Shown here piece by piece: positions 1-58,521 of a stretch of DNA of 64,000 nucleotides. The notes below the pieces were generated by a model. That model searched no databases, was not told the DNA's origin, and saw only the letters and a program-made list of their open reading frames with translations. The stretch spans positions 1 to 64,000 of the forward strand of contig QPMI01000657.1 of NCBI GenBank assembly GCA_004431415.1, read 5' to 3'. The stretch's first letter is position 1. The number at the start of each line of letters is the position of its first letter. The stretch is from Cyanophora paradoxa CCMP329 (lineage: Eukaryota > Plantae > Glaucophyta). A program made the position numbers and the translations under genes.

Positions 1-3000
1 CGCAGGCCTTGGGGTAGGCTGCGCGCTCAGCGGGGGCCGTATTGGGGTTCCGGTGCGGGCGTGACTATTTTGGGCCTGGATGGGCCTGCAATGGCTTCAT
101 CTTGGGGGGCGCGGTCTGTCTCGCTGGTTTTGGGGGGCGACACTGGAGCGGTACATTTTCCTTTGCGTTTGTGCTGCGCCAGGGCTTCGGGGAGGCAGCA
201 GCGTAACCGCACCGGCAGCTGAGGGGGGCATCCCGTGGCAGTTCTCCCGGGGCCAGCGCAGCCACCGGTATTGCCCGGGGCTGCTCGGGCTGGGAGGCGG
301 TGCTCGTGGGCGCCTCCGTATCCAAGGCCTGCGAGCCTAGAATCCGAGAAAGAATGAGGCCGCGCCAGGTGGCGCAGTTAGACACAGTGCCCGTGAAGGA
401 GGGTGTGTAGGCCGTGGGGTCATGTTCCAGAGCACGGACAAGTATTTCGGCGAAGGCACAGACGAAAATCCCGCAGTTGAAGCGATCGTTTTGGGCCGGG
501 ATGGGGAATCGGGTGGCTGAGGGGAGGGCCAGGTGAGAGCGTCGTCGGCGCCGGTCGAGGAGCCTAGGGCTGCGCATTCGCGCTCCATGTTGAGCCATTT
601 TAGGAGGGGCAGGAGTTGACGGCGGGCCTCTTCGGGGCCCGGGAGATTGTATCCATCGTATAGTTCAGCACGGCGAGCACGGAGATGGAGGGCTGCAAGG
701 ATCCAGTGGCCCGGGGTGTGGATAGGGAAGAGTAATAGGTCATAGTCAAAGACATTAATTCCGCGCCCAGCGGTGCGACGGCGCAGGCGGGCGCTGCCCG
801 CCGGCGTTATTGTCTGGGGAATAGCGGCGTAGAAAGTGTGCGGGAAAAGTAAGACGCGTCGGCGAGGGTTAATTTCTCCGCTCGCAAGAAGGTTTAGTCG
901 GGCAAGGTAGTAGTTGATGACGTCGGCGTTCACCCAGGACGAGCCGTTCAGCGTGGCTAGGTCATGGAGCGATACGGAGGCACTGCCAAACAGTGCAGCG
1001 GGGCCGCTGCGGGCTGCCGGGAGCTCTCGGACTGCGCTGTTGGGTAGAGCGCGGGTAGGGGAGCGGCGTACTTGGGCCCAGGCGGCACGTAATGCAGGTG
1101 GGGACGGCGGAGCCGGCCACCCTGCATTACTGGCATTAATATTGGTGATGCTGTTAGCAGCTGCCGGCCTAGCTACAGGTCTAGGTCTCGGGCTCGAGCT
1201 CGGGGCGGCGGTAGGGGGCACCGGCGTTGCGGGTATCGCTGTTGTAGGGGGGGCCGTGGCCGGCCACGGTGCTGGGGGAGCAGCGCGGGTTCGAGAGCGG
1301 CGCGACTGGCTGACTAATTGTAGGTCTGATGAGAGGGTGAGCTGGCCGTTGGGTATCCGTCGACGCGGGGCCGGGGCCACCACGGTCGAGGGGCTCGTGG
1401 GCTCATCCCTAATCCTGGCTGGCATCGACCTCGCCGGTGAGGGCTCAGCAGGGCGCGAGGGTCGAGGTGCATGAGTTTGGCGGCGAGTAATCCCGTGTCG
1501 GCGTTGCCAGGACTGGACTTCGCTATTGCGAGCCTTCCAGATTGCTTGGGTGTAGTCTATGATGGTGGCCATAATTGCGTTGGCGCATTTAAGCGCCGCC
1601 GGTCTACGTACATCTAAGTAAATCAGGGCAGGGATGAGGCTACGAGGAAGGAGGAGCCTGACGGTGTGGCGGGGAGAATCGCAGGCAAGGTCGGCGAAGA
1701 GTTTGCTGCCGAGGCTTTGCCACTGATCGGGCAGGCCATAGAGTGGCTGCGTGAGGTGCGAAGGAAGGGGGCCCGGCCGTTGGCGCTGACGCTCTGACCA
1801 TCCCCAGTTTGCATCGTCAGCCAGTGCAAAGGCCGGGAACAGTTGGCGCAGCAACAGTCCGTCCTGGCGCAGGGCCGGGGGCAGCTTGTAGGCTGGGTCG
1901 CCAGCTGCAGCCGCATCGACTGCAGTTTTTAGGCGTTGAGACGATATGGTTTCGTACAATAGGTTGAATATCTTAGTTTGGGCTTCGATACGGAGGGTGC
2001 GTGTTGCTGGGCAGAGACCAAAGGCGTGGTCGTGGGTTTCAGGCGTCCCGCTAACGATAGGGGGGGCCGCGGTGCCTGGCGTGCGTCTCGTGCGGCCGGG
2101 TCGCCGTTGGGGCCGTTCCGGATCCCACCGTCTTCCTCGGGGTCGGACGCAGGCGGCTGCCATGGCGGGGCTGGGGTGGGCCGGCCGTCTGGGCCTAGCA
2201 CGGACGCGCAGCCTGCGCGAACACAGAGTCCATTTGGATTTATTGCACTATAGAGATGGGGAGCGTCCCGGGCACGTTCACCCATGAGGGGTGCGAGTCC
2301 GGAGCTGAATTTCGTGATTTGAGCAAGCCTCGCATTCAGGGGGTGCGATGCATCGCGGGAGAGCCTTTCTTGCGGTATTCGCGGGCGAGGCGCGCACGGT
2401 CGACCGGACTGCCCAAATGGCATTTTTCGGTTGCAAGGAGACGGGAGAAAGTTCCGAAATTCGCACGTATTTTTTTACGTGTGCTCGCGGGTCAGACTCA
2501 ACTCTGTAAACTCTACGAAATGTCGTAGTTCTCGTTCCAGCAGCGCGGGGGCGAAAAGAGTAGGACCATGTCAAATCCGCCAGGGGAAAGACCGGCTCCC
2601 GGCGGGCGTGCCACGCGCGTTTTGATGCAACTGTTGCGGCCGGGGACGGGTCTTCGGGGTCAGATTGCCAGGCTGCTTCCTCAGGTCAGCCCAGGAAGAA
2701 AGTTCCCGGCCGTCGAGTGCCTGCCGGGAGAGGTCTGCGCTGGGTGCAGAGCCAGTGCCGCAGCGGCGAGGCGGTCGGCTCGTGCGTTGTCCCGATCAAA
2801 TGCACGGTTTGGAACCCGTTCTTCTTCCACCAGCAGGGGCAGGCTTGGTAGTCCTGGTGTATGCTGACCTAGCGCAGCCCGGGCTTCGCGCCGCCTCTGT
2901 CGTTCTGCTCGCCTGGAGGCACGAGACGCTTGCTGCATTTGGTGACGGCTCGGCGGGCGTTCCGACGGTGGATGTGGGCAGTGCCCGCGCGAAGTGCTCG

Positions 3001-6000
3001 GAGATATAGTTGTAGGCGCCGGTTAGCGGTTCGCGCGCCCTTCGTATACTCCCGTGCGGGGCCATATTGAGCTATCAGTTCCGCCTCCGTAGGTTCGGGA
3101 GCGACCGGTCTCGGTCAGAGAGGTAGGATTCGTATGAGTCTGCGTCTGATTCCGAGTCGTGGTCGCCACTTCAGCGGGGGCGGCAGCCGGGCGCGGCGGC
3201 GCCGAGTTATATATTCTTCTGGTGGGCTTTGACTTTGACAAGACGTTCTTCGTATAGCATTCTGTCGGGTGCCACGGCCCTTGCTAGTGCAAGCCGGATG
3301 CACTGCACCTCAGCATACGCTTTAAGGTGATGGGAGTACGAGGCTCGAATGCAGCTGCGAAGGGTGGCGATGGCGCGATGCGAGACGTACTTGGAATAGT
3401 CCGCCATTGCAGTGAAAGCTGTCAGTTTTCACTGTGCAGCCTTCGGGAGAGAGCAGCAGGGCGGACAGGACGGCGAGAGCTCGCCTTTGTTATTGTTCAC
3501 TGTGCCAGGACACGGGGCCACGAAAAAGTCGCTGCCGTCGGTCGGATGGCGTCTGCAAGGCCGCGAAGTTCGCACCTGGTCAGTATCGACGCCGGTTGTG
3601 CCCAGCCGGTCAGCTAGTGCGTGAATTTGTTGACGGAGGCTATCCTCGCTGCGTGCGGGCAGCTTCGTCAGCTAGTGAGGCCGGGTTGCTCTCACGGGCC
3701 AGACGCCAGCGTAGGCCGTGAGTGCAGCTTCTGAGGCGGCGTCCATGGTACTGGCATCCGTGGCTGCGAGTCGGCGCTCGCGGTCGAGCGGGAGGGAGGT
3801 GCGGCCGAGCTCCGCGGCAATCAGGTCCAAAATGGGTCAGCATACTCTGACGATGGGATGCAGAAGTCGCTCAACTGTCGGCGTTGGGGGTAGGCCCGAG
3901 GCGCTGTCGGCGGGGGGACGGTCCCAGGGTCGCGAGCGGCGACTCCATCTGGCCGCTGGGGCGCCTCGTGATCATCTGGATCATAATTCCAGTCCTGTTC
4001 CCACGGGGGGAGGAAATGAGTGTCGCGGAACTCGGGCCACCACGTTATTTTATCTTCAAGGAAAATGCGAGCATGCTCGGCGACACGGCCTGACCGCGAC
4101 TCGGGGACCAGGCTCTGAAGTCGGGCGGGGTAGATGTAGGCTGTGTCTTCGGTCCAGCGGCACCGTTGGGAGGCCGGGTCTGAGTGGTCACATGCGCGCG
4201 GAGAGCCTCTGCTTCCGGCGTTTTCGCTGTGAAGCGGCTGTCGCATTCTTTGGGATCCATTATGCAGCGGAAGAAGGAGACGGTTCGCCGGTGGTGTCAT
4301 ATATGTGGTCCTCTCGGTCGTCCTGGCCTTTGTCTCGGCGGACCCAGTGTTCGAGCTCAACTAGGACGCGTTCTCTGCCGTCGTCAGCGTCAGTTGTCCG
4401 CCGATATTGCAGATGCGTCCTAGATACGCTTCCGTTGTCCAAACGAAGCCGCCGACTTTGTACTGGGCGAGAGCAGGCCGGCTTCAAGAAGGGTACGTTG
4501 GGCTGCAGCCGGATTTTGCGCAGGCTGCAGGTGCATGGGGAAGCGGAGACGACGGGGGATGGCGCGCGGGCCGACGGGCTGACATATTGCTCGGTGAACG
4601 ACGGGAACCAGGAGGAGGTCTATTGAGTCGCTGTTTAATTTTCCCGCTGCCCCATAAGCTAATCCAGTCGAGCACACTGACGCCGTCGGGCCCCGTGACG
4701 TCAGCAGCTGTGAGGATATCGTGGCGCCAAAGGAATGGTGCAGCCTCACGCAGGAGGCGCGGGGGGAGCAGTGTTGTGAGCACAAAGCGGCGTTCGAGCT
4801 GCGGGTGAGGCAGGGCCGGAACGAGATAGTCCTTGCCTGAGTCGAGTTTGTAGCCGGCGCGGGTCAGATTTCGCGCTACAGCTAGTGCAAAATTGTCTCT
4901 GTAGGCTGCGGGGCCCAGCTGTAAATTGGGGTAGCAGTATGGCGGAAGGGGAAGCCCCAGTTGCTCCTGCGCTGCGAAAATGCGGTGCATGATATACGGG
5001 AGAAGCAGGGGGTGGTTCGTGCGGATGGTTTCATCGAGCACGTGAATGGCCAGCTGTTCGTCCTCCGTTCTCTTGAGGCCGTAGAAGCCTCGGCTCCACA
5101 TGAGCGCGTTGGGCGTGGACCCCCTAAGGCGGGCATGATGTTTAGTGAGCGTCATCCAGAGAGTGTCGAGCTGGGCACATTGTCTCTCGGTAAAGGAAAC
5201 AATCTTGCAGGCGTAAGTGATGCGAGGGAGAAGGACGCTATTTACTATGTATATCGTCTCTTTGGCGGTGAGTTCTTACGCCTTAGTATCGCGCAGGCTG
5301 CCCGAGCTGTTGAGTATACAGCCTCAAATTGCCGCCGCCAGTCCAGATTTGCTGTCATCCAGACCCGAGCACCTTGAATGGTTTGTTCGGCGCAAGGACT
5401 TTGTCGGCCGGTTCTTTAGCATCGGGCGGGCCTAGTAGCGGGCAGACGGGCGTGGGAGACGTTGTTGTACGTAAATTCGTTTTCTTCGCGTTGAGGGCAA
5501 TATCATGTATCCAGAAGAATTCAGAGGCCAGGTCTGCGTGCAGCTGGATGCCCCGGGCTGTACCGCTAATAAGTACGGTGTCGTCTGCGTATGCTTGCCC
5601 CGGCGAGGTCACCCGAGGCAGGCGCGCTTCGCAGGCGTCGGGTGGGCGCGGGCAGGTTAGCGTCAGACGCAGAGGCGGCGGGCCCATGGAGTATTGGGTG
5701 CTCTCCGCAGCGCTGACTTCGCGTAAAGCCGATAGAAATACGTCATAGAAGATGAGCCAGTGAATTGGGGACTCGGTTCCTCCTTGCGGGAGCCCGCACT
5801 CCACATCGAAGGGTCAGTTGGGCCGTACCCTGTCGCGACGGACGCTGTACGTGATGTTGATATTTGTCCGTAGAGGCTTATGTACCGTTCGGGAATTTTT
5901 AGGCGGCGGAGTGCCATTTCCATGCTAGACCAGCTGACGCTGTCGTAGGCTCTGCGAATATCTAGCAGTAGCAGATAGATCGGTTTCGAGAATTGTTTTG

Positions 6001-8544
6001 CGTCCTCCAGTAGCGCGCGCAGCATGTACAGAGGCTCGTCGGTGGACTTGCCTCGAGTAAAGGCGAAGTTCGCGCCCTGTAATATGTCGTGTTGCGGAGA
6101 ACGCGCGAGAGGCGGTCAGTGAGGACTGCCGTCACGAGTTTCAGCGTGCATTCTTGGAGTGTAATGGGGCGGACATTGTCAGGGTGCCATCCCATTCCCC
6201 GCCCTTGGGATAAGACATATATTTCCGTGAAGAAGGGCGCAGGGACAGACGAGAGTTTTAGGATCAGATTTACCGTAGTGAGGATTACCTGGCGGCACGT
6301 CGGGAACAGGTTATCGGGTTCTTGGAGCGGCTCCGGTCCAGGCCCGCCTTGCGTAGTTCTTCGCAAGTTTTCTTTGAAAGGACCGGTGCCGTCCACAGCA
6401 TTTTTATCATTTCGTGGGAAAATCCCGAGGGCCCCGCCGCACCGTTTCGGAGAGAGCCGATGATTCGGTCCAGTTCGGCCTCGCTGGTGGGTTCCATTAG
6501 GTACACATAAATTGCATCATCAATATCCTGGCGCGGGGAGTGAAGTCGGCGCCATATTGAGGCCTCCTGTGCACATGTACTAAGTGGCAGCGCGCCCGGG
6601 TCCCTGTTCGCTGTGAGTGGGCTACGCTGCCGTGTCCAGGCATGCATGTGATGGCGTGCGAACTGTTTCACTGCATCTTCATTGCCGTATACCTGATATT
6701 CTCCAGCGTGGCAGAGGGAGAAGGAGGTAATCGGCCTGCGTTCTGGGGCTTCAAGTGTTTGGCGGAGGTATTGGGCGAGGTCTGTCTTGAACATGCGCTG
6801 CGAGCGCTCTCGGTTTGCTCTGATTGTCGTGGCTTCGAACGTTTAATGTGGGCCTGGACTTTGGTGTCCAAGGCCGAGGCCCAAGTGGTGAAGCTTGGAA
6901 AATAGTCGAGCCAGCTTGGTTGTCGGGCAGAGAATGGCGGCGGCACAGGGGGTAGTGGGAGTTTAAGATAGCCTGACCGCTTGTCTATTGGGAGTTTGTC
7001 AAGCCGGCGGTTGTGATTTGAGATTGCCCTGCGCAGGTCAGAGAGGGAGTGCCGTACGCGGCGCGGCGTGGAGTCGATCCCGTGGCGCGCCGCTTCCCAT
7101 GCCTTGCGCAGTTCCTGGGCCCTCGTGAGCAGGTTGGATTCGGGCGGCCGCGGCGGGAGAATTTTTGAGGGATTTTTGGGGGCGTAAAGATGCAAATACT
7201 GGCGATTGGCCGAGGTCACAGATGTGGGCGAGAGTGGATTTGAGGGCTTCGTGCAGGCGGGCTAGGCGGTCCTCTGGCGGGGTGCCGTCGTCGTCCTCCA
7301 GCGTTGCGAGTAGCTCTCGTACGCTAGCTGAGGACCCCGGCACCGGCTGCTGTAGCTTTTCTTCCAGTAGTTCTTTGAAGCGAATTTTTGTGAGCGATGC
7401 CTGTGTCGCGTACTTGAAACGCGGGGGGCCGGGCGAAGACGCTGGGGGCCCCAGTTTATATTTGATGGCCAGGGCCCGTTTACTGTACTCTGCAAGGAGT
7501 GGGAAATGGTCCGAGGGGAAAGGGGCGTTTCTAGGCGACGCTTGGGCCGCTCGAAGGGCGTTAGTCGCGACTTGGGATTGTAAGATGTAGTCGAGCCTGG
7601 TAGCATGGCGGAGCGTGCCATCTGGGGCGATGCCTCGAGGGTTGGGGTTGTCAGGAGCGTCAGGAAATATGAAGGTGATTTGGTCGTCGGTGCCCATGGC
7701 TGTGGCAGCGTCGGAGAGGGTCCAGTCGTGAAGCAGTTCATGCCACCAGCGGTGATCAGGTTCTCGTGTGGTCGCATATTGCCCCTGTCTGATTTTGCCC
7801 GTCTCGGGACAGAGGCAGCTGTTAAGAATCGCCAAGGAGGAAAAAGTGCGCGCGGGGGCGGAGCGCCCAGTCAGCGTACATGGTCGCGCGGAGATAGTCG
7901 AAGATTTTCGCACTTTCAGTAGACCGCGCCGTCCGACTTTCGCCGGGGGGAGGTACACGCTGGCGATAAAGATCTGAACATTATTTGCAAATCGAAGCTC
8001 ACAGCCGGCCACGCGGCCTGGCATTGTGTAGGTCTTAAAACAGTGCTTGGCCATATTTTCTGAGAGAAAAAGGGTTACGCCGGAGCCGCGGGGGAGGCTC
8101 GATTTTGGCGGAGTTTCTTCTGCGAGAGGGGCGGGGTGGGCGGGGCTCGAGCTGGGAGCTCCTGAGCACTAGTTGTGCGCGTGGCCGAGTCGGCGTGCAC
8201 GGACGTGAGCATGAGCCCCGATGTCACTGACCTGCGCATCGCTCTGACCGTAGCCTGGGTGCAGTTAAGTGATTGGACCCCTAATACGCTCAGCCCCCAG
8301 TCAAGCATATATTTCTGGATCTGGCCGACATGGTTGACGCTAGAGCAGGTGCGGGCGTTCCAGGTCGCGAGTCTCCAGTACTGGTCAGAGTCAAAGCGGC
8401 GGCGTATGATACCCGATTTTCGGTGAGTGCCCGCAGGTTTGGCTCCGAGGCGCTCGTGTGTAAACAGCTCGAGGGGAAATAGCGTGCGGAGCAGCGGCGC
8501 GGGACGGCCGCACCAGCGGGGCCAGGCGTGTTATATGCGGTCAT
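1..8544 (-). CDS. LINE copy A ORF2 polyprotein (frameshifted in this assembly)
   Basis: APE: LATWNAR, IASVYLP, TRLDYIL, SDHFP (~8400-7450). RT: RPITLQE, LLDIRRAYDSV, LPQGG..SP, AYADDT (~6500-5355). RNase H: ATDAS, NNNKGE, TDS, VKVKAH, NARADRLA (~3770-2760). CCHC: CVRAGC..ETHDHAFGLC. C48: GHW, YDG, QNDRFNCGIF (~980-420). Start codon uncertain. Confidence 0.88.
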
Positions 8545-9569
8545 GGGACTCTGGGCGGGTGGAACATTTTCTTGTGCCCCTGGTGCAGGCCAGACTCCAG
8601 GCCTGGGTTCTTCGCGGCGGTGCGCGGGGGGCGGGCCGGATAGCGCTGTCGTTGGATGCCATGATGCCGGGCTCGCGCGTGATGCATGGGCCAGCATGGC
8701 CGGGTCAGCTTGGCCCGCCGCGGCGAGGGCCGAGCCCGCTGCCGCTGCCTGGCGGCGCCACCCCGCATTCGCATGTGAGCCTCTAGCGCTGTGGTCATGG
8801 CAGCTATCGGGCCCGATTGACTGGTTGCTCCCGATTGGCGGGTGCACAATGAATGGCGACGACGACGTAGTGCCGGCGCTAGCGGCCGTCCGGGAGGCAG
8901 AAAAAATTCTTTTTCTGTTCATGCATATGTCTTGGGGCCGGGGACTCGGACGGTTCGCCGGAGCCAGTGATCGAGCTCGCGGTAGGCGTCGCGGAGATTC
9001 GAATTCGGGTCGGGATCCAGCTGCAGCGCCGGCCGCGGCGTGCACCGCCGTGCAGTCTACAGTGCAGACCGTACACGTGCGGGCCACTGACAGTGAGGCT
9101 ACGTATGCTATGCTGGCGGTAGCGCCGGCGGCGCACATACACAGTGTCATACTGGTACTAGTAATTGTAGTGGCGGTGGCGCTAGCTGTTGTGATTGCCT
9201 TGGCGTACCCATCTTTGGCAGCCCTAGCTCTAGATCGGGATCTGGGGCCTGCTAGGTCGTGATCGGGGGGGCTGTTACTACTCAAGTTAAAGGTGGCGCC
9301 GGCGCCGGTGCGCGTGCCGGCGCCAGCTGTTTCGGTATCATATGCATTAGTGCTAGTGCAAGGCATTATAACTACTCGGAGCCGCGTATACGTATACGTA
9401 CGTGCCGACGGCGCCGTCAGGTCGAGGCCGGCATCGGCACCGGTACCGGCGTCGGCGTCGGTCCTCTGGCATCTTTGATCATGACAGGCTAGCCGGCGCC
9501 GGCGCCGTAGTACTAGTAGCTTCTGAGGTACAGGTCTGTAGCGGGGCCGGCTTCGGCACCGGCCTCGGG

Positions 9570-9878
9570 CTCCTGGCTTCGCTTAGGGACTAGCTGTCGT
9601 GTTACGTATACAGCAGGATCCGCGGCCTGCTGGGGCCGAGTCCGGGAGGCAGCGGTCGGTGTCGTAAGAACAGGCTGGCGCTTCAGGCCGGTGGTGCAGT
9701 CATGATTAGACTGTTCTCCTAGCGTGGCTGTCGAGCGTGCGCGAGCCCGGGCTAGCCGGATCCGCACAGTTGATGGGTACGTTTTCCACCCACGTACCCC
9801 TCTGGGCCTCGCGTGCAAGTCGTGATCGGGTCTAGATCTACAGGGCCAGGTGCGCGTCCGGCGCGTATGAGTACGGGT
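9570..9878 (-). repeat. ~300-bp structured segment upstream of ORF2; also at 18964-19266 and 55505-55813
   Basis: Direct match with few differences. Hairpins GGGTACGT/ACGTACCC, CAGCAGG/CCTGCTG and CAGTC/GACTG. Confidence 0.9.
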
Positions 9879-9977
9879 GTTCTCCTTTGGGTCCCCCACT
9901 GGTACCACCGCTCTGCACCTGTTTAGCTCTAGCTCGAGATCTGGATGTTGTGACTTCGGCGTCGAGGTGTCCGTACA

Positions 9978-10043
9978 TGACGGGACTAGAGCTAGCGCTA
10001 TTACTGGTTCTGACGGGACTAGAGCTAGCGCTATTACTGGTTC
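9978..10043. repeat. 33-bp tandem duplication in the LINE inter-ORF spacer
   Basis: TGACGGGACTAGAGCTAGCGCTATTACTGGTTC x2; also present in copy B at ~55913-55978. Confidence 0.9.
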
Positions 10044-10125
10044 AGGATCTAGGCCGGAGGGGCTTGGCTGCCTTACTCTTAGCTTGCTGTGGCTCGCGGC
10101 GGTTGGCGCTGGAGTTGCAGCTAGC

Positions 10126-13100
10126 TCAGTACTGCCAGGGCAGCCGCTGCTGTCCAGGGCCGCCGCCACCCCGGCCGGCGCCAGCCCCAAAGCCGCGGCC
10201 ACCACGTGCTCCTCGTCCACCCCTGCCGCCGGCGCCACGGCCTGGGAGTCCGCGCCCACCGCGGGGGGGGCCCATCCCGCCCCGGGCTCTCCCAGCAAAG
10301 CCGCCCCGGGGGAGGTCGCCCCAGATGATGTCCACCCCACGGCCACCGCGGCCATTGGCTGCGCCCGCCCCGCCGCGGGCATCCAGATGCCGGCTCCGCC
10401 GCGGGCTCCATGGGCTCCGCCAGCCCCGCCGCGGCCTCCAGCGCCGCCTGCACCGCCCCAGTCGCCTCCGGCCCTCCAAGTCCGCCACGGCCGCCCGCAG
10501 CCCCGCCGGGCCCCCGCCACGCGCTCCGCGGTAGGCAGCGTCCACATACAGTCCACCGCGCCCTCCGCCCGACCCCCAGGTGCTTGCCCTCCTGCAGCTG
10601 CCGGCTCGTCCCGGTTCCGCCGGTCGAGGGGCTGGCAGTTGTGTCCCCCCCCGAGCTCGCCACGGTAGTTGAGCAGGGGCTGGTTGATGTTGTTGACGCT
10701 GGTGAGGAAGTGTGCCGCGCACATGAGGGCTTCGGACTGGGGGAGGGGGATGACCACGTGCTGCCGGTAAGGATAATTATGTGAGATGGGGGGGGGGCCT
10801 CGGGCGGAGGGGAGGTGGGGGGTACCACATCGTGGGTGACCTCGAGAATGATGACCTGTCCCCCCCGCGCGTCGTGGAGGTCGAGGGCTCGGAGAGGGTT
10901 GGGTGCGCCGTGAAGCCCATGCGCTCGCGCCTCGCCGCCCACTGTTCGTCATCTAGATCCAGCACACGGAGCTGGCGGCCACCACCGGTGGAGTAACGCT
11001 CGCGTCAACCATCGAGGCTTGGACACCCACCTCGATCTGCGGGAGGGAGGGGTAAGCGCAAGTAGGGGGGGCTTTGCATGGGTAGGGCGGACAGAGGTGG
11101 GTACGGTCGGGTTGTCATGTACAGGACGCCGGCGGCCCGCAGGTCCATGATGAACTGCCGGTCCGGCACAAGCTGTGTGATGTCCAGCTGGCATTCGTTG
11201 CCGGGGAAGGGGACATGCTCCTGGTTGGCGTCGGCGTGCCCACAGCCGGCGTGGGCCCCGGCAAAGATGAGGACTCCGTTGAGGACATGCTTGCGGTCGT
11301 TGTTCCAGCAGAAGTCCGGGTCCGGGTCTTGGAAGCGGGGAGGTGATGAGGGCTGAGTTGTTGTCTGCGGCCAGGAGGTAGCCAACGTTTGCCTGCCAAG
11401 GGAGGGAGGGGAGAGTCAGAAGGGGGGTAAGGTGGTAAGAGCAGGTGGCAGGTCGGACCAGGAAGTTCTGCGCGGCCTGTGCGTGCGACGCCGGGATCAG
11501 GTAGCGGCTGTCGGCCGTTCGGGCACTTGACTGCCAGCTCGTTGTAGGCCACGACGACATCGTTGGCCTCGTACGCGTCGGGGTTGATGCCAGACGTGAG
11601 GGCGCGGAGCACTGTGTTCTTCATGAAGCTCGAGAGTGTCCCCCTCTCCATCTTGCGGCACCCTAGCTCGGCTTCGATCGCAAAGAACTCGGTGCTGGAC
11701 GCGGGGGCGTCAACGTGGATGCCGACTGAGAGCGGCCCTGTTGCGCCAAGCACGGCGAGCGTCGCGAGTTGCGGCGTGACCGGTGTAAGGAGCTGGGCTG
11801 CGCGCCGAGCCTCCGTGATGTTGGCATACTTGATTGCGATGCACGGGCTGGACTCCTCGATCCGGTCGCCGCAGACCACGTGGCCGCAGCGGAGGTCACA
11901 GCGTCGTCGGCGGTGCTGGATTCTGGCAGCGGCGGGAGGGGGTTGCGGAGTGCTGAGGGGTCGGCACCCTCGCCGATGCGGTGGTCCGGATGCGGGCCCG
12001 GTCGGCTTGGTGTGCGGCGGCGATGCGGCCCCGGATCTCATTGACCACCGCTCGGATCTGGAGGCCTTCCCGTCGGCATGTGGACCGTGCAGAGGCCAGG
12101 ATCTCGTCGCGGGTGTCTTGCGGGGCGTCTGGGGGGACGAGTCGCGAGGCCAGGCCGTCGCCGAAGAGGACCAGATAGACCTTTGCAGTGTTAGGTCCGG
12201 TCCCGTTGGCTGCTGCTGCCGGCCTGCCGCCGCCACCGCCTCCGCCGTACACGTTGCCGTCGCCTCCGGCCGGGCTTGCCCATCGTTGTCGCCGCCGTCC
12301 TCCCGTCCCAGTTGAGACGGCGTCCAGCACCGCCGGCCCAGTTTCCGCCGTCCCGTCCGCCTGGCCCGCCAGGCCCGTCGTTCCCGTCGCGTTGACCACC
12401 GTTGCGCGCAATGCGCTCGTCGTGCCGATCGCCGGCGCCGCGGGCCTGGCCGCCGTGTCCATCCCGTCCGCCGTGCCCGTTGCGGCCGCCGTGCTGGCCG
12501 GCGCGTTCACGTGCACCACCTACATGTACCCCCCCTGCGTCAGCGCTCTGGGCGCAGCCGTGCATGGGGCGGTGTGGGGCCTACCCTGGCCACCCCAGCA
12601 TCGTCATCGGCGCCCTGTGCTCCGCCATGCTGGCCATCTCCATGCTGTACCCCCCACCTCCAGCGCCACGGTCAGCATGCGCCTCTTCGATATCTCGGCC
12701 GTCTGCAGGGGCACCCACATGGTCGGCCCTCAGGCATTGGGCCCCAGCTTGCCAGGGCTCAGTGCGGTACTCACCGCGTTCTCGTGCATCCCCCATGTCG
12801 GCGTCACCCTCGGCGTCCCCTGCGTGGTGATCTTCGCCCTCGCCATCTGCGTGGGTGCCCGCCGCATTGGTGATCTGGGTGTCCCCCCCGCAGTATTCGG
12901 GGCAGTGCTCACGCTGGCCCATGCCGCCGTGTTCATCGTTGCGGTGTACCCCCCCCTCTCCAGCTCCACGGTCAGCGTCATCGTCTCGGTCGTCATCTCC
13001 TACGATAGTGCCCTCATGGTCAGTCCTTCTGATTGGAGGACGGTCGCTAGCACGGGGGCAGGGGCGGTGCGGACTCTCGTTCTCGTCGTCGGCGTCATTA

Positions 13101-14350
13101 GGGTCGACGTCGACGTCGTCGGCATCGTTGCGGTTCCCGGCGCCCCCGTTCCGGTGTCCCCTGTGGCCCTCGTCGTCGCTGTCGCCTCCAGGGTTCGCTC
13201 CTTGCCCTCCGCCGGCCAGTCCGCCGTCGCCAGCTGCGCCTTGGCCTTGGTTTCCGTCACCCTCAGCTTGCCGGCTGCCTCGTTCGCCCCCTCTTCGCGA
13301 TCGCCACGGTCTTGGCCCCCGCCGCTGCGCCTGCCGCCGGGCGCCTGATCGTCGTCTCCCTGCTGAGCGTCCTCATATTCACTGTCCGAGTGCTGATCGC
13401 GGTGCTGCTGGCCGCGGTGGCGATGGCGCTCGGGTGACGGGATGGCGGCCCCGCGGGCCGGGGGCGTTCTGCGGGGCGCCCTCGAGTTCGCCCTGGCGCC
13501 GGCGCCGCGCGCATTGGTTCTGGGCAACGCCATCGGCGGGTGGGTCGTGAGCGGGGCGCACGGGACTGGCGACCAGCGCCACTGGGGGTCATCAGCTGGG
13601 CGGGCCCGGGCCTGTGATCGTTTGAGTGGGGCTGGGCGACTACAGCAGGGCAAGAGGCGGCGGGGCTCACTGGCATGGGCGCCGGGATGGGTCTAGAGCT
13701 CGACGAGCTCGGGAGTGACGCCGCGGGCACCTGTGATGGCCCAGCGGCAGATGCGAAGTACTGGCGGAGGTCGTTACGCTGCGGTTTCGCTTTGTGAGGG
13801 CGACTGGGGGAGGTGCCAACCGGGTGCCGGGGAAGTAATGGCGCACTGCTACGGGCCGACGGCGCCAGCCTCGCCGGCGCCTTGTCCGCGGCGTGCTGGT
13901 TGGCTGCCACTACGTGCGCCGGGCCGGGCGGCGTCCGATTGGTCCGGATTCTGCACATGAAGGGAGGTATGAACGGGTGAATCGGTGGTTGCAGGCGGAG
14001 CGTCAGGTTCCGGACCATTCGGGGTTGCCATTTCGGTTTGGCGTGTCGCCCGGCCTGTATCCACGCATAGACTTCTCCGTGTGGCGGCGGGACGGGGTGG
14101 CCGGCTCTGCCGACTGCGGGCGTTGTCGCTTCGATCCCGGCCCGGTTTCCGGGCCACGGCCAGTTCGGGGGTCAGCCGCCGCGTTGGGGTCGTCGTTGCT
14201 GTCAGCATCGTCGTCAGGCGCCATCCGGCCGCCCAGCCGCGCCAGCGGTGCGAATGGATTGCCGTCCAGGGTGCTGACTGCTGTACCCGTCCGGTTGTTC
14301 CTCCCCCGGGTCAGAGTTTGGGCTGTCTTAGGACTACAGCTAGCTGTAGC
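10126..14350 (-). CDS. LINE copy A ORF1, spliced, unknown fold with C-terminal RGG-rich tail
   Basis: High-GC3 frames joined by GT-AG introns (10761-10825, ~11037-11104, 11393-11458). Ends ...RGGRGARGGRGFGAGAGRGGGGPGQQRLPWQY* at 10126. Lies upstream of ORF2 and is co-duplicated in copy B. 5' boundary approximate. Confidence 0.65.
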
Positions 14351-14555
14351 TAGCGTTAACAATTGTCCGTGGGCAGATGCCTGAGGTCGGTGATTTTGTC
14401 TGTGGATGCATGTGCATGCATATGCTCGGCGTGCGTGCGTCTGCTTGCATGGGCAGTCGAGGGACGGCAGGCTAGAGATCCAGCTGTAGTGCATGCATAT
14501 GCAGGCCCCGGCTGGCGTCGCAAGGTGGTGGCGGGGGGCGGCCGACAGCAGCGGG

Positions 14556-17500
14556 TCCCCTCACGTCCTGGGCGACCGGCGGCGGCGTCGCGCGCTCCTG
14601 CGGCAGGGCGCGCGCGCGCGGGGGGGGCGCGGGCGGGTTGCACGGGCTCGCTCGGCGTCGGCGGAGGCGTCGGTGGCGTAGCGGCCTCGTCCCTCGCGTC
14701 CTGGGCGACCGCGGCGGCGTCGCGCGGCTCCTGCGGCGGGCGTGCGGCGCGCGGGCGGGGGCGCGGGCGGGCTGCACGGCTCGCTCGGCGTCGGCAGGAG
14801 GCGTCGGCGGCGTCGCGGCCTCGTCCCCTCGCGTCCTGGGCGTCCGGCGGCGGCGGCGCGCGGCCTCCTGCGGCGGGGCGCGCGGCGCGCGGGGGGGGGC
14901 GCGGGCGGGGCTGCACGGGCTCGCTCGGCGTCGGCGGGAGGCGTCGGCGGCGTAGCGGCCTCGTCCCCTCGCGTCCTGGGCGACCGGCGGCGGCGTCGCG
15001 CGGCCTCCTGCAGCGGGGCGCGCGGCGCGCGGGCGGGGGGCGCGGGCGGGGTTGCACGGGCTCGCTCGGCGTCGGCGGGAGGCGTCGGTGGCGTAGCGGC
15101 CTCGTCCCCTCGCGTCCTGGGCGTCCGGCGGCGGCGGCGCGCGGCTCCTGCGGCGGGGCGCGCGGCGCGCGGGCGGGGGCGCGGCGGGGCTGCACGGGCT
15201 CGCTCGGCGTCGGCGGGAGGCGTCGGCGGCGTAGCGGCCTCGTCCCCTCGCGTCCTGGGCGACCGGCGGCGGCGTCGCGCGGCCTCCTGCAGCGGGGCGC
15301 GCGGCGCGCGGGCGGGGGCGCGGGCGGGGTGCACGGGCTCGCTCGGCGTCGGCGGGAGGCGTCGGCGGCGTAGCGGCCTCGTCCCCTCACGTCCTGGGCG
15401 ACCGGCGGCGGCGTCGCGCGGCCTCCTGCGGCGGGCGCGCGGCGCGCGGGCGGGGGGCGCGGGCGGGGCTGCACGGGCTCGCTCGGCGTCGGCGGGAGGC
15501 GTCGGCGGCGTAGCGGCCTCGTCCCCTCGCGTCCTGGGCGTCCGGCGGCGGCGTCGCGCGGCCTCCTGCGGCGGGGCGCGCGGCGCGCGGGCGGGGGGCG
15601 CGGGCGGGGCTGCACGGGCTCGCTCGGCGTCGGCGGGAGGCGTCGGCGGCGTAGCGGCCTCGTCCCTCACGTCCTGGGCGACCGGCGGCGGCGGCGCGCG
15701 GCCTCCTGCGGCGGGGCGCGCGGCGCGCGGCGGGGGCGCGGGCGGGCTGCACGGGCTCGCTCGGCGTCGGCGGGAGGCGTCGGCGGCGTCGCGGCCTCGT
15801 CCCTCGCGTCCTGGGCGTCCGGCGGCGGCGTCGCGCGGCCTCCTGCGGCGGGGCGCGCGGCGCGCGGGCGGGGGCGCGGGCGGGGCTGCACGGGCTCGCT
15901 CGGCGTCGGCGGGAGGCGTCGGCGGCGTCGCGGCCTCGTCCCCTCGCGTCCTGGGCGTTCGGCGGCGGCGGCGCGCGGCCTCCTGCAGCGGGGCGCGCGG
16001 CGCGCGGGCGGGGGCGCGGGCGGGGCTGCACGGGCTCGCTCGGCGTCGGCGGGAGGCGTCGGCGGCGTCGCGGCCTCGTCCCCTCGCGTCCTGGGCGTCC
16101 GGCGGCGGCGTCGCGCGGCCTCCTGCGGCGGGGCGCGCGGCGCGCGGGCGGGGGCGCGGGCGGGGCTGCACGGGCTCGCTCGGCGTCGGCGGGAGGCGTC
16201 GGCGGCGTAGCGGCCTCGTCCCCTCGCGTCCTGGGCGTCCGGCGGCGGCGGCGCGCGGCCTCCTGCAGCGGGGCGCGCGGCGCGCGGGCGGGGGCGCGGG
16301 CGGGGCTGCACGGGCTCGCTCGGCGTCGGCGGAGGCGTCGGCGGCGTCGCGGCCTCGTCCCCTCGCGTCCTGGGCGTCCGGCGGCGGCGGCGCGCGGCCT
16401 CCTGCGGCGGGGCGCGCGGCGCGCGGGCGGGGGGCGCGGGCGGGGCTGCACGGGCTCGCTCGGCGTCGGCGGGAGGCGTCGGCGGCGTCGCGGCCTCGTC
16501 CCTCGCGTCCTGGGCGTCCGGCGGCGGCGGCGCGCGGCCTCCTGCGGCGGGGCGCGCGGCGCGCGGGCGGGGGGCGCGGGCGGGGCTGCACGGGCTCGCT
16601 CGGCGTCGGCGGGAGGCGTCGGCGGCGTAGCGGCCTCGTCCCCTCGCGTCCTGGGCGTCCGGCGGCGGCGGCGCGCGGCCTCCTGCGGCGGGGCGCGCGG
16701 CGCGCGGGCGGGGGACGCGGGCGGGGCTGCACGGGCTCGCTCGGCGTCGGCGGGAGGCGTCGCGGCGTCGCGGCCTCGTCCCTCGCGTCCTGGGCGTCCG
16801 GCGGCGGCGGCGCGCGGCCTCCTGCGGTGGGCGCGCGCGCGCGGGCGGGGGCGCGGGCGGGGCTGCACGGGCTCGCTCGGCGTCGGCGGGAGGCGTCGGC
16901 GGCGTCGCGGCCTCGTCCCCTCGCGTCCTGGGCGTCCGGCGGCGGCGGCGCGCGGCCTCCTGCGGCGGGGCGCGCGGCGCGCGGGCGGGGGCGCGGGCGG
17001 GCTGCACGGGCTCGCTCGGCGTCGGCGGGAGGCGTCGGCGGCGTCGCGGCCTCGTCCCCTCGCGTCCTGGGCGTCCGGCGGCGGCGGCGCGCGGCCTCCT
17101 GCGGCGGGGCGCGCGGCGCGCGGGCGGGGGCGCGGGCGGGGCTGCACGGGCTCGCTCGGCGTCGGCGGGAGGCGTCGGCGGCGTAGCGGCCTCGTCCCCT
17201 CGCGTCCTGGGCGTCCGGCGGCGGCGGCGCGCGCCTCCTGCGGCGGGGCGCGCGGCGCGCGGGCGGGGACGCGGGCGGGCTGCACGGGCTCGCTCGGCGT
17301 CGGCGGGAGGCGTCGGCGGCGTCGCGGCCTCGTCCCCTCGCGTCCTGGCGTCCGGCGGCGGCGCGCGGCCTCCTGCGGCGGGGCGCGCGGCGCGCGGGCG
17401 GGGGACGCGGGCGGGGCTGCACGGGCTCGCTCGGCGTCGGCGGGAGGCGTCGGCGGCGTAGCGGCCTCGTCCCTCGCGTCCTGGGCGTCCGGCGGCGGCG

Positions 17501-18536
17501 GCGCGCGGCCTCCTGCGGTGGGGCGCGCGGCGCGCGGGCGGGGGCGCGGGCGGGGCTGCACGGGCTCGCTCGGCGTCGGCGGGAGGCGTCGGCGGCGTCG
17601 CGGCCTCGTCCCCTCGCGTCCTGGGCGTCCGGCGGCGGCGGCGCGCGGCCTCCTGCGGCGGGGCGCGCGGCGCGCGGGCGGGGGCGCGGGCGGGGCTGCA
17701 CGGGCTCGCTCGGCGTCGGCGGGAGGCGTCGGCGGCGTCGCGGCCTCGTCCCCTCGCGTCCTGGGCGTCCGGCGGCGGCGGCGCGCGGCCTCCTGCGGCG
17801 GGGCGCGCGGCGCGCGGGCGGGGGCGCGGGCGGGGCTGCACGGGCTCGCTCGGCGTCGGCGGAGGCGTCGGCGGCGTAGCGGCCTCGTCCCTCGCGTCCT
17901 GGGCGTCCGGCGGCGGCGGCGCGCGGCCTCCTGCGGCGGGGCGCGCGGCGCGCGGGCGGGGACGCGGGCGGGGCTGCACGGGCTCGCTCGGCGTCGGCGG
18001 GAGGCGTCGGCGGCGTCGCGGCCTCGTCCCCTCGCGTCCTGGGCGTCCGGCGGCGGCGGCGCGCGGCCTCCTGCGGTGGGGCGCGCGGCGCGCGGGCGGG
18101 GGGCGCGGGCGGGGCTGCACGGGCTCGCTCGGCGTCGGCGGGAGGCGTCGGCGGCGTAGCGGCCTCGTCCCCTCGCGTCCTGGGCGTCCGGCGGCGGCGG
18201 CGCGCGGCCTCCTGCGGCGGGCGCGCGGCGCGCGGGCGGGGGCGCGGGCGGGGCTGCACGGGCTCGCTCGGCGTCGGCGGGAGGCGTCGGCGGCGTCGCG
18301 GCCTCGTCCCTCGCGTCCTGGCGTCCGGCGGCGGCGGCGCGCGGCCTCCTGCGGCGGGGCGCGCGGCGCGCGGGCGGGGGCGCGGGCGGGGCTGCACGGG
18401 CTCGCTCGGCGTCGGCGGGAGGCGTCGGCGGCGTAGCGGCCTCGTCCCCTCGCGTCCTGGGCGTCCGGCGGCGGCGGCGCGCGGCCTCCTGCGGCGGGGC
18501 GCGCGGCGCGCGGGCGGGGGGCGCGGGCGGGGCTGT
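14556..18536. repeat. GC-rich tandem array, ~140-bp unit, ~28 copies
   Basis: The same position of the unit recurs at 15901, 16041 and 16181 (period 140). Units differ mainly by a few SNPs and single-base indels. Confidence 0.95.
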
Positions 18537-18835
18537 CCGGCACGCCTTGGTGGCGGTCGGAAGCGTAGGCGGGCTGTTTGCGCCCCTCGTTGTCCCGGGC
18601 GATCGTCAGCGTCAGTAGCGCGGCCGCGGTACGGGTTGCTGCGGTCGAGCGGGGGAGGGGAAGCCAGCGGGTTGCAAGCGCGTAGCTACCCGAGTTTGAG
18701 CGTGTCTGGCTGAGGTCTCCAGCGGTGTGAGCATTCGGGCAGGCTGACAGAATCTCGGCTGACGCTGAAAGCTCGAGGTTTCCTAGGAGCTGTCTACAGC
18801 GGACCGGGTCCGCATTCAGATAAGCGTGCAGGCAC

Positions 18836-18930
18836 GCATTCAGGGCAAGCGTTCGAGGCCAGCGTTCAGGGCAAGCGTTCAGGGCCAGCGTTCGGGGCAA
18901 GCGTTCAGGGTCAGCGTTCCGGGCATGCGG
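18836..18930. repeat. 13-bp minisatellite (GCGTTCAGGGCMA-like, ~7 copies)
   Basis: gcgttcagggcaa / gcgttcagggcca / gcgttcggggcaa / gcgttcagggtca in tandem. Confidence 0.8.
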
Positions 18931-18963
18931 CTCGGCCGAGGATGGACGCGGCGTAAGGCCGGC

Positions 18964-19266
18964 CTCCTGGCTTCGCTTAGAGACTAGCTTTCGTGTTACA
19001 GCAGGATCCGCGGCCTGCTGGGGCCGGGTCCGGGAGGCAGCGGTCGGTGTCGTAAGAGCAGGCTGGCGCTTCAGGCCGGTGGTGCAGTCATGATTAGACT
19101 GTTCTCCTAGCGTGGCTGTCGAGCGTGCGCGAGCCCGGGCTAGCCGGATCCGCACATTTGATGGGTACGTTTTCCACCCACGTACCCCTCTGGGCCTCGC
19201 GTGCAAGTCGTGATCGGGTCTAGATCTACAGGGCCAGGTGCGCGTCCGGCGCGTATGAGTACGGGT
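18964..19266 (-). repeat. Second copy of the ~300-bp LINE segment; candidate 5' leader of copy A
   Basis: Matches 9570-9878 in the same orientation, and the match ends sharply at 19266. Confidence 0.85.
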
Positions 19267-20124
19267 TAATTTGCACCATGCTCTCGCAGCTAGAAGAGTG
19301 GGGGGTACGTACCGAACTGACGCGCACTCGTCCTGCTTCGCGCCTGCACTGGCATGCACTACGATGCGTATAGACCTTGCGCCGTCCCTGGGGCCGCACA
19401 GAATCGACGTGCGCCACCCCTGCGTGCAGTGCCGCCCGCCCCATGCTAGCTACATCTATATGCTGAACGCGACTTGCACGGCCGCGTCCCTGAGCGTGCG
19501 CTGCGGCCATTTCACATGCACTAGACTACATTCATCGCTTCTGAGGTGCCCCCGTCGCCCCGCTATGCGCAGACACAAGGCACATGCATATCATATACTT
19601 CTGGCGCTATAGAACTCTCTAGTTACCGGCCTGTCTACCCCCTCGCAGCCGGCCTCGCGTCGCGCAGCCGGCCGCTCCGCACTCCCGCGTGCCGCGCCTG
19701 GGCCGGCCGCGGGTTAGCCGAGCAGCTAGTGCCGCGCGGGCCAGGCGCGGGGACCGTCGGACACGGGAGCTCGAGTGCGGTGGCGCGCGCGGCTCGCGCG
19801 CCGGCAGAGCGGAGCGCGCGCGCGGCGCGACGCCCCGCGGCCGGCCGCGCGCGGAGGCGCGGCGGGCGGCGCGCGGCGCGATTATGCTTAGCTGCGCTCT
19901 ACAAGCAGTGCATGCTGCCGCAGTGCAGTGCAGCTGCAGGCTGGCACATCGCGGTTGCGTGGGCGGCAAGTCGTTGGCGGCGGCAACTTCCGGCAAGGAG
20001 CCTTGCGCGGGACTCGGGATACAGCAAAAAGAGACGTCCGGCGGCGCCGGCCTTATCCACAGCGGGGTACCACAAAAAGACTTATCGCCGACGGAAAAAA
20101 GACCGACTTGCAAACTGGCCGACT

Positions 20125-20193
20125 TGGACAGCGTGACAGACAATCCGACGGGTAGCAAGGGGGGTTTGAGCAGCTGACCCCCCCTTGCAATAA
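20125..20193 (-). mobile_element. Possible Helentron/HINE (DINE-like) 5' terminus
   Basis: Minus strand reads TTATT-GCAAGGGGGG...CCCCCCTTGC (hairpin 20155-20188), then TCGGATTGTCTGTCA. It coincides with the point where the Tx1-like LINE stops without a tail. Other end not identified. Confidence 0.3.
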
Positions 20194-20789
20194 GAGGAGG
20201 GGCGAAACGCAAGCCAGTAGTGACAGGGAAGGCAGACGATGGGGCTGAACCAGGCGGGAGAGGCAAATATAGCGAAGTAGAAGAGAGAGAAGGGTACACA
20301 CGAGGAACGTCACCATACACAAAATACTCACTGCCAAAAACTATACGGTCTGACGGTCGCTGAAGATAAAGAGGCGGAACTGCCTGAGGGCTAACAGTGA
20401 GAGATGGAGGAGGAAGAGGCAGAGCTAACGACAAAGGGAACGGAATCAAAGGTACAGGGAAGGCATGGAATACACGAGGAACTGGAAGGTGGAGGGGCCA
20501 GTGCTCCTAACTAACATCGATGAAGCATCTGATGGAGGTGACGGCAAAACAACTGAGGGTAAACTAAGTTGAGGTGAAGCGAAGATTGATACAAGACTAT
20601 CATGAATCAAAGGGGGCCATGCAGGAACCGGCGGGCGAGGTGGATCTGGCGGACAGCCAGAGGGAAGCCGAAGGTACAGGAGAGGAAAGCCGCAGGCGCC
20701 GAGACACATGGACAGGGACGGTTCGGCATCGGGAGGCAAGGTTGAATTCGACGGAGACCGGGGGCGGCGGATTCGTGAAACGGAAGGTA

Positions 20790-23700: not shown

Positions 23701-25681
23701 CAAGGTCCAGAAAAGAAACTCCCAATTCACCCGATCATAGGCTTTGGAGAAATCAAGGAACCCCAAACAAAGTTCCTCGAGATCGGGATTATCCCCCTCA
23801 TAATACATCAATAAATATACGAGCATAAATTGATGCACCGCAGAACGTTTGGTGATAAAACCCGACTGATATTTTGATATTAAGCGGGGCATGATAGGGG
23901 TCAAGCGGTTAGATAATGCCCGCTCGACTGCTCGCTCCTCTACATTCGATAGAGCGATAGGCCGACGGTTAGTGACCAAAGTCGCATCCGTACCAGGTTT
24001 CGGAATTGGGACAATGAGGATATCTCGTAGCGAGCCAGGGGCCGCCTTCCGATTATGCATAGCCTTAAGGTATTCCATAAAATCTGGACCAATGTCGCCC
24101 CAGAAAGTACTATAAAATTCAGGTACTAAACCATCAAGTCCAGGGGATTTTCTAAGCCCAGATATATCCTTAAACGATTGCAACAATTCATAGGCGGCCA
24201 GTGGGGTATCGAGATCCACGGCCTCCCGCGGTATGAGTTTATAAGGCGCATACAGTAACGCACATTCAGCCCGTTCATCACGATGCGCCGCCACCACACT
24301 TTGAGCTTGCTGACCATCGTATAAATCAGCGAAATGAGCTGCCGACAACGTCATAAGCACAAAGGGATTATCAGAAGCATAAGAGGGATCCGGGGTGTTG
24401 GCCGGCCGGAGTTTATTCTCACATCCGGTCTCCTGCTCAGCAGTTCCGAAATAATGAGTGAAAAACTCCCGTCTCGATGTGGCCTCGTTCTGACTTGAGA
24501 ATAGCGAGTCAGCTTGAACGGCAGCCCTACACACTTGAGGCATGCGTTCCCGCAGCTCTCTATAAAGAGCAGAGCGGCCACTCAAGAAACTGTCCCGTAA
24601 GATCTCGCCCTGCGAATAGGCGGTGATGAGACGTTCGAGACGTTTCATGGCAGACCAGTAAGCCGACTTATTCTTGCGCCGCTCAGTCGACTCCCACGCA
24701 GAGAGAGCAGTCTGTAGATACCGTTTAAGAGCTTCGAAGCGAAGAATAGAATCGGATGCAGGCGAAGGCCACTCAGCACGCCACATCTGAAAAACCTTCC
24801 GAATTTCAGCGAGATACGCTGGGTTCTTCCCATAAAGGTCCCATCGCATCTTCCAGCGACCCGGCCCACGCTGATGAACTGGAGGGGACAGCGTGAGTTG
24901 AATTCCAATGTGATCAGAAAGAGGCCTATCAAGATGTCTGGAAGTGTATTTCATCCATGGGACGAGCACTGGGTTCCATGCGAGTAGGGATTGAGAGACA
25001 AAGAAATAATCTAGACGAGATTCGACGGCCCCGAGGCTGCCTGGGCATTAGTCCGATAAAACGTTTTAAATCGATTAGACCGGCGCTCATCCGTAGCAAG
25101 CGATGCAACATCCTGGAGTTGATATTGCGAGCAAACCGCTTCAAAGGATGCAGGGGGCGACACCCGCCCGAAGTACTGTTCGCGTCAGAAGGCAAAAGGT
25201 GAAAGTTAAAATCACCACATAAGATTAAATGGGACCCCACAGGAACGACCGAATCCAGAGTATGACACAATGTCTCGTAGAAGCCTAACCGTTCAGCATC
25301 CTGAACAGGTGCGTAAATGTTGCACAGGTAAATATTTACAGTTCCAGAGCGCAACAGGAACAGCTGCAGCCGGGAACTCTGTGCAGGAGCTAGCGAGGTA
25401 ATGCTAAATCGCTTATTAGGGAAGAGAGTAGCTACACCTTGACTGGCAACTTCTGGATTGAAAGCCCAGTACGAAGGGGTAGCCCCCCACTTGCCTTTCA
25501 GAAAATCAGCGTCTACTTTACTCGATACGTGAGTTTCCTGTAAACAAACTATGGATTTGCGAGACTGTTCACGAGCACACTTAAGGAGATAATCAACGTG
25601 GTGCATACCAAGTGAAGCACAGAAGCTTGTGTCTCCTACTAATTTCCCTGCAACGTTCAGGGAGACAATATTGATGGCCAT
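20790..25681 (-). CDS. Tx1/L1-like ORF2 (APE-RT-zf-RVT, plus a C2H2 finger in the extension), frameshifted
   Basis: SLNVAG, CLQETH, NIYAP, CGDFN, SDH; KSPGLDG, RRPIALSN, FLDFSKAYDRV, GVRQG, QFADDT, KYLG, DGGL; CRAC..SVRHVFFDC; CPICGKNFQSSADRDRHVRADKH. Confidence 0.9.
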
Positions 25682-25759
25682 AGTATGATCACGGTGGTTT
25701 AAAGAATCCAGAGAAAACTATGTACAAGCTTAAATTCAAGAAGGGCAAAATACGAGACG

Positions 25760-58435: not shown

Positions 58436-58521
58436 GCCGGAGAACATCCCGTCTCCATCCCGTCAGCCTATGCCCGTTTGTCGACGTTGTCGCCCGTTTA
58501 ATTTGCACGACCAAAAAAAGG

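Follow-up and report, generated by a model that had tools for sequence, protein, structure and literature searches.

We analysed a window of 64,000 nucleotides of the glaucophyte alga Cyanophora paradoxa CCMP329 (positions 1 to 64,000 of the forward strand of contig QPMI01000657.1, assembly GCA_004431415.1), which carries two near-identical copies of a long repeat, copy A (1-12489) and copy B (45907-58435). On the minus strand of each copy lies an intron-bearing protein-coding gene, here called gene X, followed by a long interspersed nuclear element (LINE) whose main open reading frame (ORF) is ORF2. The subject of this analysis is whether gene X and its spliceosomal introns belong to the LINE. 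Two EukProt gene models match the unspliced ORF of gene X, tig00021571_g22354 in copy A (P0003) and g22359 in copy B (P0002), and two further models are near-identical (tig00020951_g16454, P0001; tig00021569_g22353, P0004). Gene X and the three introns within the repeat are placed as follows.

9917-14224, minus strand: gene X, full copy A (model g22354), from an RNA contig and gene models P0001, P0003 and P0004
56061-58435, minus strand: gene X, copy B (model g22359), from the repeat boundary 12489/58435, the ORF list and the mapping of P0002
57333-57398, minus strand: intron 1, copy B, 66 nt, GT-AG; joint in runs X1, X5 and X8, retained in the DNA contig of X9
56973-57029, minus strand: intron 2, copy B, 57 nt, GT-AG; joint 56972>57030 in X1 and X5, retained in X9
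56695-56759, minus strand: intron 3, copy B, 65 nt, GT-AG; joint 56694>56760 in X1 and X5, retained in X9
11393-11458, minus strand: intron 1, copy A, 66 nt, identical in sequence to copy B, from the B-to-A coordinate map
11037-11092, minus strand: intron 2, copy A, 56 nt as assembled, one C short, from the B-to-A coordinate map
10761-10825, minus strand: intron 3, copy A, 65 nt, from the B-to-A coordinate map

The introns were examined by comparing contigs of four public sequencing runs (X1, X5, X8 and X9) with copy B between 52700 and 58600. X1 and X5 represent two studies and X8 a third; the label of RNA for these three is a guess, their coverage being transcriptome-like, and X9 is an Illumina DNA run. 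Because the spacer upstream of the LINE is uncovered in X1 and X5 and fully covered in X9, the former two are probably RNA. The original prediction, made from the letters of the window alone, had proposed three short sense-strand GT...CAG introns in both copies, and the contigs of the three probable RNA studies do skip these segments, with exact joints for all three in X1 and X5 and for the 66-nt intron also in X8, while an unbroken contig of X9 (56296-57541) retains them all. The skipped segments read CT..AC on the plus strand and thus GT..AG on the minus strand; the 66-nt joint is listed by the tool as 57331>57398 with "cut +1", which places the intron at 57333-57398. The coordinates proposed for the 66-nt and 65-nt introns held, and for the middle intron the acceptor stood but the donor proved to be GTCCGC at 57029/11092, not 57042/11104 or 11127. 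The pyrimidine-rich character and branch-like motifs that had been noticed are borne out by a measured 71-77% pyrimidine, with CTGAC or CTTAC ahead of the CAG. Both the 66-nt and the 57-nt intron have a length that is a multiple of three and contain no in-frame stop; removal of the 65-nt intron joins two different frames, as had been expected (...VIILEVTHDV / HVVIPLPQSEALMCAAHF...), and shifts translation into the exon that encodes an RGG-rich tail. These three introns are proven to be real, spliceosomal and on the sense strand, removed from RNA and retained in both DNA copies. A candidate fourth intron (45-52 nt, ~11923-11974) was rejected, the RNA contig being continuous over 57398-58435. 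Further candidates at 13951-14015 and 13000-13074 lie outside the repeat and match predicted introns (gaps 14020-13951 and 13074-13000) in P0001, P0003 and P0004; they are among ~7-8 additional short introns that the published models predict upstream in gene X.

The quality of the assembly bears on every reading frame discussed here. The published C. paradoxa assembly was made with Canu from PacBio RSII data (PMC6704402), and copies A and B are 99.25% identical. Because 83 of the 96 differences between them are 1-bp homopolymer indels, most apparent frameshifts in gene X and the LINE are assembly errors; once assembly indels are disregarded, the copies are ~99.9% identical, a true divergence of ~0.1%. 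Genuine frameshifts in the exons were considered and rejected, as RNA and DNA contigs agree with the copy B exons apart from five extra C's (56238-56355). These C's, present in the Illumina contigs and missing from the assembly, are at 56238, 56252, 56267, 56314 and 56355, and frames in this assembly are unreliable without read support. The flanks to the right of 12489 and of 58435 are unrelated, the repeat boundary is abrupt, and no similarity was found between the right flank of copy B and the remainder of the window. Frequent 1-bp errors and the guessed RNA label of X1, X5 and X8 might raise the suspicion that copy B or its junction is a PacBio mis-join and that an intron-less DNA copy is the source of the "spliced" contigs. 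We consider this very improbable: X1 and X5 show against X9 the coverage pattern of a transcriptome, the joints are exactly GT-AG in three studies, and a unitig of X9 ends exactly at 58435, which fits a real branch and not a PacBio assembly artefact.

Copy A contains gene X in full, with a TGA stop at 10128-10126 and coding exons predicted to at least 14224. Copy B contains only the 3' 2.4 kb, ending abruptly in exon 1 without a start codon of its own. The RNA contig of gene X, 3,588 nt long in X1 and 3,614 nt in X5, runs from 55949 to 58435 and extends 1,284 nt beyond 58435 into the flank of copy A (its loose end is A 12490-12519), which identifies A as the copy that is transcribed and puts the start of the gene far beyond the repeat. 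In the 3' untranslated region (UTR) of gene X, a perfect tandem duplication of 33 bp (9978-10043) explains why RNA and DNA contigs both break at 55942-55949. The protein has a low-complexity N-terminus, a central domain of ~400 aa and an RGG-rich tail (...GRGGRGARGGRGFGAGAGRGGGGPGQQRLPWQY) that ends at the stop codon given above; the frame of the tail was followed by frame arithmetic, with the five extra C's of the RNA and DNA contigs counted in. The Gly/Asp/Arg-rich N-terminal region (12250-12520 / 58150-58450, minus strand) also contains a second overlapping frame, MDTAARPAAP.... The GC content at third codon positions (GC3) is higher in this second frame than in the one leading on into the domain, and gene models switch from one to the other.

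We found little that resembles protein X. In an exhaustive HMMER search of 1.84 billion representatives, the sole relative besides near-identical copies was another Cyanophora gene model, tig00000605_g2514 (P0005; E = 2.6e-07), whose N-terminus resembles both of the overlapping N-terminal frames of X, and word-indexed protein searches gave matches to Cyanophora gene models only. Pfam gave no match for the X exons, for P0002:86-493, P0003:595-803 or P0001:1-470, or for the spacer frame; the PDB gave no match for the central domain, and the top score of that domain in the Protein Atlas, 0.75, offered no lead. Structure prediction, which had been suggested as a check, did not yield a usable fold (AlphaFold2 on a three-row alignment of the domain, predicted local distance difference test 35.7). 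A dioxygenase of the TET/JBP 2-oxoglutarate-Fe(II) type (CMD1-like, with GHAD as its H-x-D motif) was considered and rejected, with no PDB match and no conservation of GHAD in P0005; P0005 does conserve the separate HVD and AHxGC motifs of X. A recognisable ORF1 domain (coiled coil-RRM-CTD, CCHC knuckle, esterase or PHD) was likewise absent from X in the Pfam, PDB and Atlas comparisons, and gene X is not a classical ORF1.

Judged by its predicted domains, the element downstream of gene X is a LINE of the apurinic/apyrimidinic endonuclease (APE) type, in which APE, reverse transcriptase (RT), RNase H and Ulp1 are followed by AATAAA and poly(A). A GIY-YIG endonuclease gave no match in any Pfam scan of the window; the endonuclease is APE. 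Breaks in the ORF2 frame between domains coincide with assembly indels. The LINE, the frame that leads into it and a repeat in the spacer, called R, are located as follows.

44887-54478, minus strand: LINE body, copy B, from Pfam matches and sequence
1-8546, minus strand: LINE body, copy A, its 3' side cut by the window start; 99.25% identity to B, with RT and C48 matches
54478, minus strand: start ATG of ORF2, copy B, from sequence
54195-52918, minus strand: APE (Exo_endo_phos), N-terminal to RT, from Pfam
53146-51278, minus strand: RT (RVT_1), from Pfam, E = 2.6e-21; fragments also in copy A
~49400, minus strand: RNase H, weak Pfam match
46866-46246, minus strand: Ulp1/C48, from Pfam
44887-44898, minus strand: AATAAA in the 3' UTR, then A12 (12 T's on the plus strand), from sequence
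54473-58514, minus strand: unspliced open frame of 1,348 codons, copy B, from the ORF and stop count
54473-54478 (A 8541-8546), minus strand: ATGA overlap of the upstream frame's stop with the ORF2 ATG, from sequence
9566-9878 (A), 55501-55813 (B) and 18960-19266, minus strand at 9566-9878: repeat R, 313 bp, between X and the LINE, from sequence comparison

The architecture of P0005 is the first link between gene X and the LINE. In this model an ORF2 N-terminus and APE come immediately after an X-like domain (residues 447-851; 23-27% identity); they are 55-58% identical to this LINE at 54443-53470, and the switch from X-like to ORF2 sequence aligns with the donor of the third intron of X. A copy of P0005's LINE that is 98-100% identical, RT included, is present on another contig (P0006), so this second LINE family is multi-copy. 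As far as an automatic gene model such as P0005 can be trusted, the comparison suggests that X precedes ORF2 in two diverged LINE families and evolves faster than ORF2, as is common among ORF1s. Gene X might instead be a host gene, perhaps an old domesticated LINE ORF1, with a young LINE inserted or kept just downstream, copy B a DNA-level duplication and the introns ordinary and uninformative on retrotransposition. We judge this rather unlikely, in part since the only distant paralogue of X also sits directly upstream of the APE of a related, multi-copy LINE.

The second link is the frame that leads from gene X into ORF2, which we observe directly. The 1,348-codon frame of unspliced copy B passes through X exons, all three introns, the 3' UTR, R and the spacer to a TGA at 54475-54473 that overlaps the ORF2 start. 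Between 56238 and 54476 (1,762 nt, GC 64.6%) it has no stops, compared with 36 and 18 in the other frames and 14.3 expected, and none of 5,000 shuffles of this region was open; calculated piece by piece, the sequence before the first in-frame ATG (55300) has a probability of ~5e-5 of being open by chance. All copies of R share this open frame, with 4-5 stops in the other two frames. The frame is not an assembly effect, because an Illumina DNA contig matches copy B gap-free over 54312-55942. It runs from exon 4 via the 3' UTR and spacer to the ORF2 ATG, very unlikely by chance, which argues against a mere host gene beside a LINE. A frame on the same strand upstream thus overlaps the start of ORF2, and with the order of P0005 (an automatic model) this places X where an ORF1 would be.

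The third link is the shape of copy B, which comprises the LINE, R and the intron-bearing 3' part of X, and then, after the abrupt end in exon 1, a foreign flank. This is what would be expected of a 5'-truncated LINE copy, with two copies visible, and the right flank of B is unlike that of A, so the host-gene explanation could not call on a simple tandem duplication. The original prediction had regarded the introns as lying in ORF1 of a poly(A)-tailed LINE; the LINE is there, with its APE-RT-RNase H-C48 order, AATAAA and A12, and is tied to X by these three indirect links, but X belongs to no known ORF1 family. On balance we lean towards gene X being the 5' gene of a giant Cyanophora LINE, an ORF1 by position and not by family.

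Several observations weigh against this assignment, and many of them are what a host gene would be expected to show. The X mRNA is abundant and fully spliced, and its start lies no less than 1.28 kb beyond the A/B repeat. RNA is present at 55916 and its depth is about zero over 54079-55851, which places the 3' end of the mRNA at ~A 9917-9981, ~40-100 nt before R and ~1.4 kb before ORF2. No RNA crosses the spacer between this end and ORF2 in X1 and X5, and no unspliced full-length RNA was seen in the runs examined. With about ten short introns, gene X is probably built like an ordinary Cyanophora gene, in a genome of 67.6% GC whose introns have a mean length of 86 bp and number 9.2 per gene (PMC6704402). 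The GC3 of its exons, 0.85-0.95, is also host-like, compared with ~0.6 in the LINE ORF2. No target-site duplication (TSD) of at least 7 bp, long or short, convincingly joins the flanks of copy B, and the 3' flank of copy A lies outside the window, which leaves room for a DNA-level duplication; only ~2-4 copies are seen. P0005, as an automatic model, could fuse two neighbouring genes. In copy A the unspliced frame does not stay open upstream of 12580. RNA contigs of three runs (52726-53934) are ~96% identical to the APE region of the LINE and share the same foreign sequence from 53934, so another expressed ORF2 copy has a different 5' side, without X. Finally R, whose 313 bp are 3x104+1, sits in the spacer, separating gene X from the LINE, and recurs beside a second LINE; a later insertion of R would mean that the frame was not open throughout in its present form.

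The recurrence of R raises a further explanation that involves the sequence upstream of gene X, where two features stand on the far side of copy A.

14555-18535, no strand: tandem array of 140-bp units, 28.6 copies, 88% GC, directly upstream of X in copy A
~19267-26900, minus strand: second, unrelated and AT-richer LINE, with APE at 25681-24929 and RT at 24969-21257

The block from 9879 to 19266 (R, 390 bp, the array and X) could be a separate mobile or chimeric unit without RT, set head-to-tail between two LINEs, though we consider this improbable. The block has a sharp edge of R at either end, and the copy in A differs from that at 18960-19266 by 1.6% substitutions; the latter abuts the 3' side of the second LINE, and the former lies as close to the mRNA end of X as noted above. 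For such a unit, R would have to be common with the LINE as a shared 5' module or a long TSD, a part of the explanation to which we give little credence, even with long TSDs published for Dualen LINEs of Chlamydomonas (PMC9977147). Copy B would have arisen by read-through or template switching between two RNAs, which seems equally doubtful. Such a unit leaves the same X-then-ORF2 order in the diverged P0005 family unexplained, and the R next to X is more simply a 5'-truncated fragment of the neighbouring LINE family. R itself may be a long TSD, a shared 5' module or a truncated LINE fragment. One low-depth DNA contig of X9 skips 137 bp within R (55573-55711, with only 20 letters on its shorter side) and may represent a variant of R elsewhere in the genome.

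If gene X is the 5' gene of the LINE, the unit on the minus strand would begin, at its 5' end, with multi-exon X, or possibly with the 140-bp array ahead of it, and continue with a ~1.4-kb spacer, ORF2 with APE-RT-RNase H-Ulp1, and AATAAA with poly(A). We suggest that its RNA would have two fates. The abundant spliced RNA, ending internally at ~9917-9981, would give protein X, whose RGG-rich tail is probably RNA-binding. A rare unspliced read-through RNA would serve as genomic RNA. In it, the two introns that are in frame and stop-free would avoid early stops, and retention of the 65-nt intron would keep ribosomes in the frame that stays open to the TGA overlapping the ORF2 ATG, so that ORF2 could be reached by termination and reinitiation at the ATGA. 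Reverse transcription of the unspliced RNA would then yield a 5'-truncated copy such as B that still bears introns. The read-through RNA and the translational coupling are things that we infer; since copy B has no TSD and the 3' flank of copy A lies outside the window, the same holds for RNA-mediated copying of B. We therefore put forward only tentatively, and at less than even confidence, a Cyanophora LINE clade with a multi-intron 5' gene and retrovirus-like RNA handling, in which a spliced, internally polyadenylated mRNA gives an RGG-tailed protein and the template is read-through RNA that stays unspliced, with introns and spacer free of stops up to an ATGA restart on ORF2.

Retrotransposition is expected to strip sense-strand introns, and to our knowledge Penelope-like elements (PLEs) are the only retroelements integrating without long terminal repeats (LTRs) that keep them. 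Intron retention after retrotransposition has been described as a peculiarity of PLEs, "highly unusual among retroelements" (PMC8557442). As in this element, genomic copies of PLEs keep spliceosomal introns that are removed from the mRNA (PMC8557442). PLEs differ in their GIY-YIG endonuclease, telomerase-like RT, pseudo-LTRs (pLTRs) and usually single 5' UTR intron, whereas the LINE described here is of the APE type, encodes RNase H and Ulp1, and carries three or more introns within a protein-coding gene at its 5' side. No intron-retaining LINE was found in the literature searched.

Other known systems share parts of this arrangement. Stop-start coupling of ORF1 and ORF2 is known from bicistronic LINEs, such as SART1 with its UAAUG and L1 with termination-reinitiation. 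There too the upstream frame of an APE-RT element with a poly(A) tail ends on the ORF2 start, here ATGA, but in this element that frame is continuous only in unspliced RNA and takes in the introns and ~590 codons without a recognisable domain; the protein, with no RRM, CCHC or esterase, is unlike known ORF1 types. Retroviruses and intron-bearing LTR elements (Ogre) separate a spliced subgenomic mRNA from an unspliced genomic RNA; the proposed split would be similar, in a non-LTR element whose integration would be by target-primed reverse transcription. Spliced LINE RNAs are known as well, and those of human L1 (SpIREs) give deleted copies. The present case is the opposite of SpIREs and of processed retrogenes, as none of the three introns is missing from either DNA copy or from the Illumina DNA contig. 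In LINE 5' transduction and chimeric retrocopies, as in copy B, a LINE copy carries upstream non-LINE sequence. Transduced or chimeric mRNA parts are normally processed, whereas in this case none of the three introns has been lost, and the gene order recurs in a distant LINE family.

The remaining features of the window concern its other repeats. Several frames of the 140-bp array contain spurious ORFs longer than 1,200 aa, and by analogy with mouse L1 the array may be a monomer-type promoter or 5' region. The second LINE has a 302-aa ORF upstream (26898-25993), and its orientation, shared with the other elements, points to LINEs clustered head to tail; a third LINE may end in the 11 T's at 28145-28155. 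An older and different tandem array of 134-bp units (82% matches; 58523-59267) starts ~85 bp past the truncated end of copy B. Rfam and tRNA scans of the window were empty.

The window gives direct evidence that introns beside or in a LINE 5' gene are spliced. If gene X is a host gene, the locus shows an ordinary gene beside a LINE and serves as a warning about gene models that fuse the two. If gene X is instead the 5' gene of the LINE, with unspliced RNA as the template, this would be the first APE-type LINE shown to carry spliceosomal introns through retrotransposition, and LINEs could part mRNA from genomic RNA by splicing. Introns and a spacer that are open in frame up to ORF2 would then be a sequence signature that can be searched for, and the finding would bear on how introns and host-like genes enter and leave the mobile elements of an intron-dense, early-branching alga.

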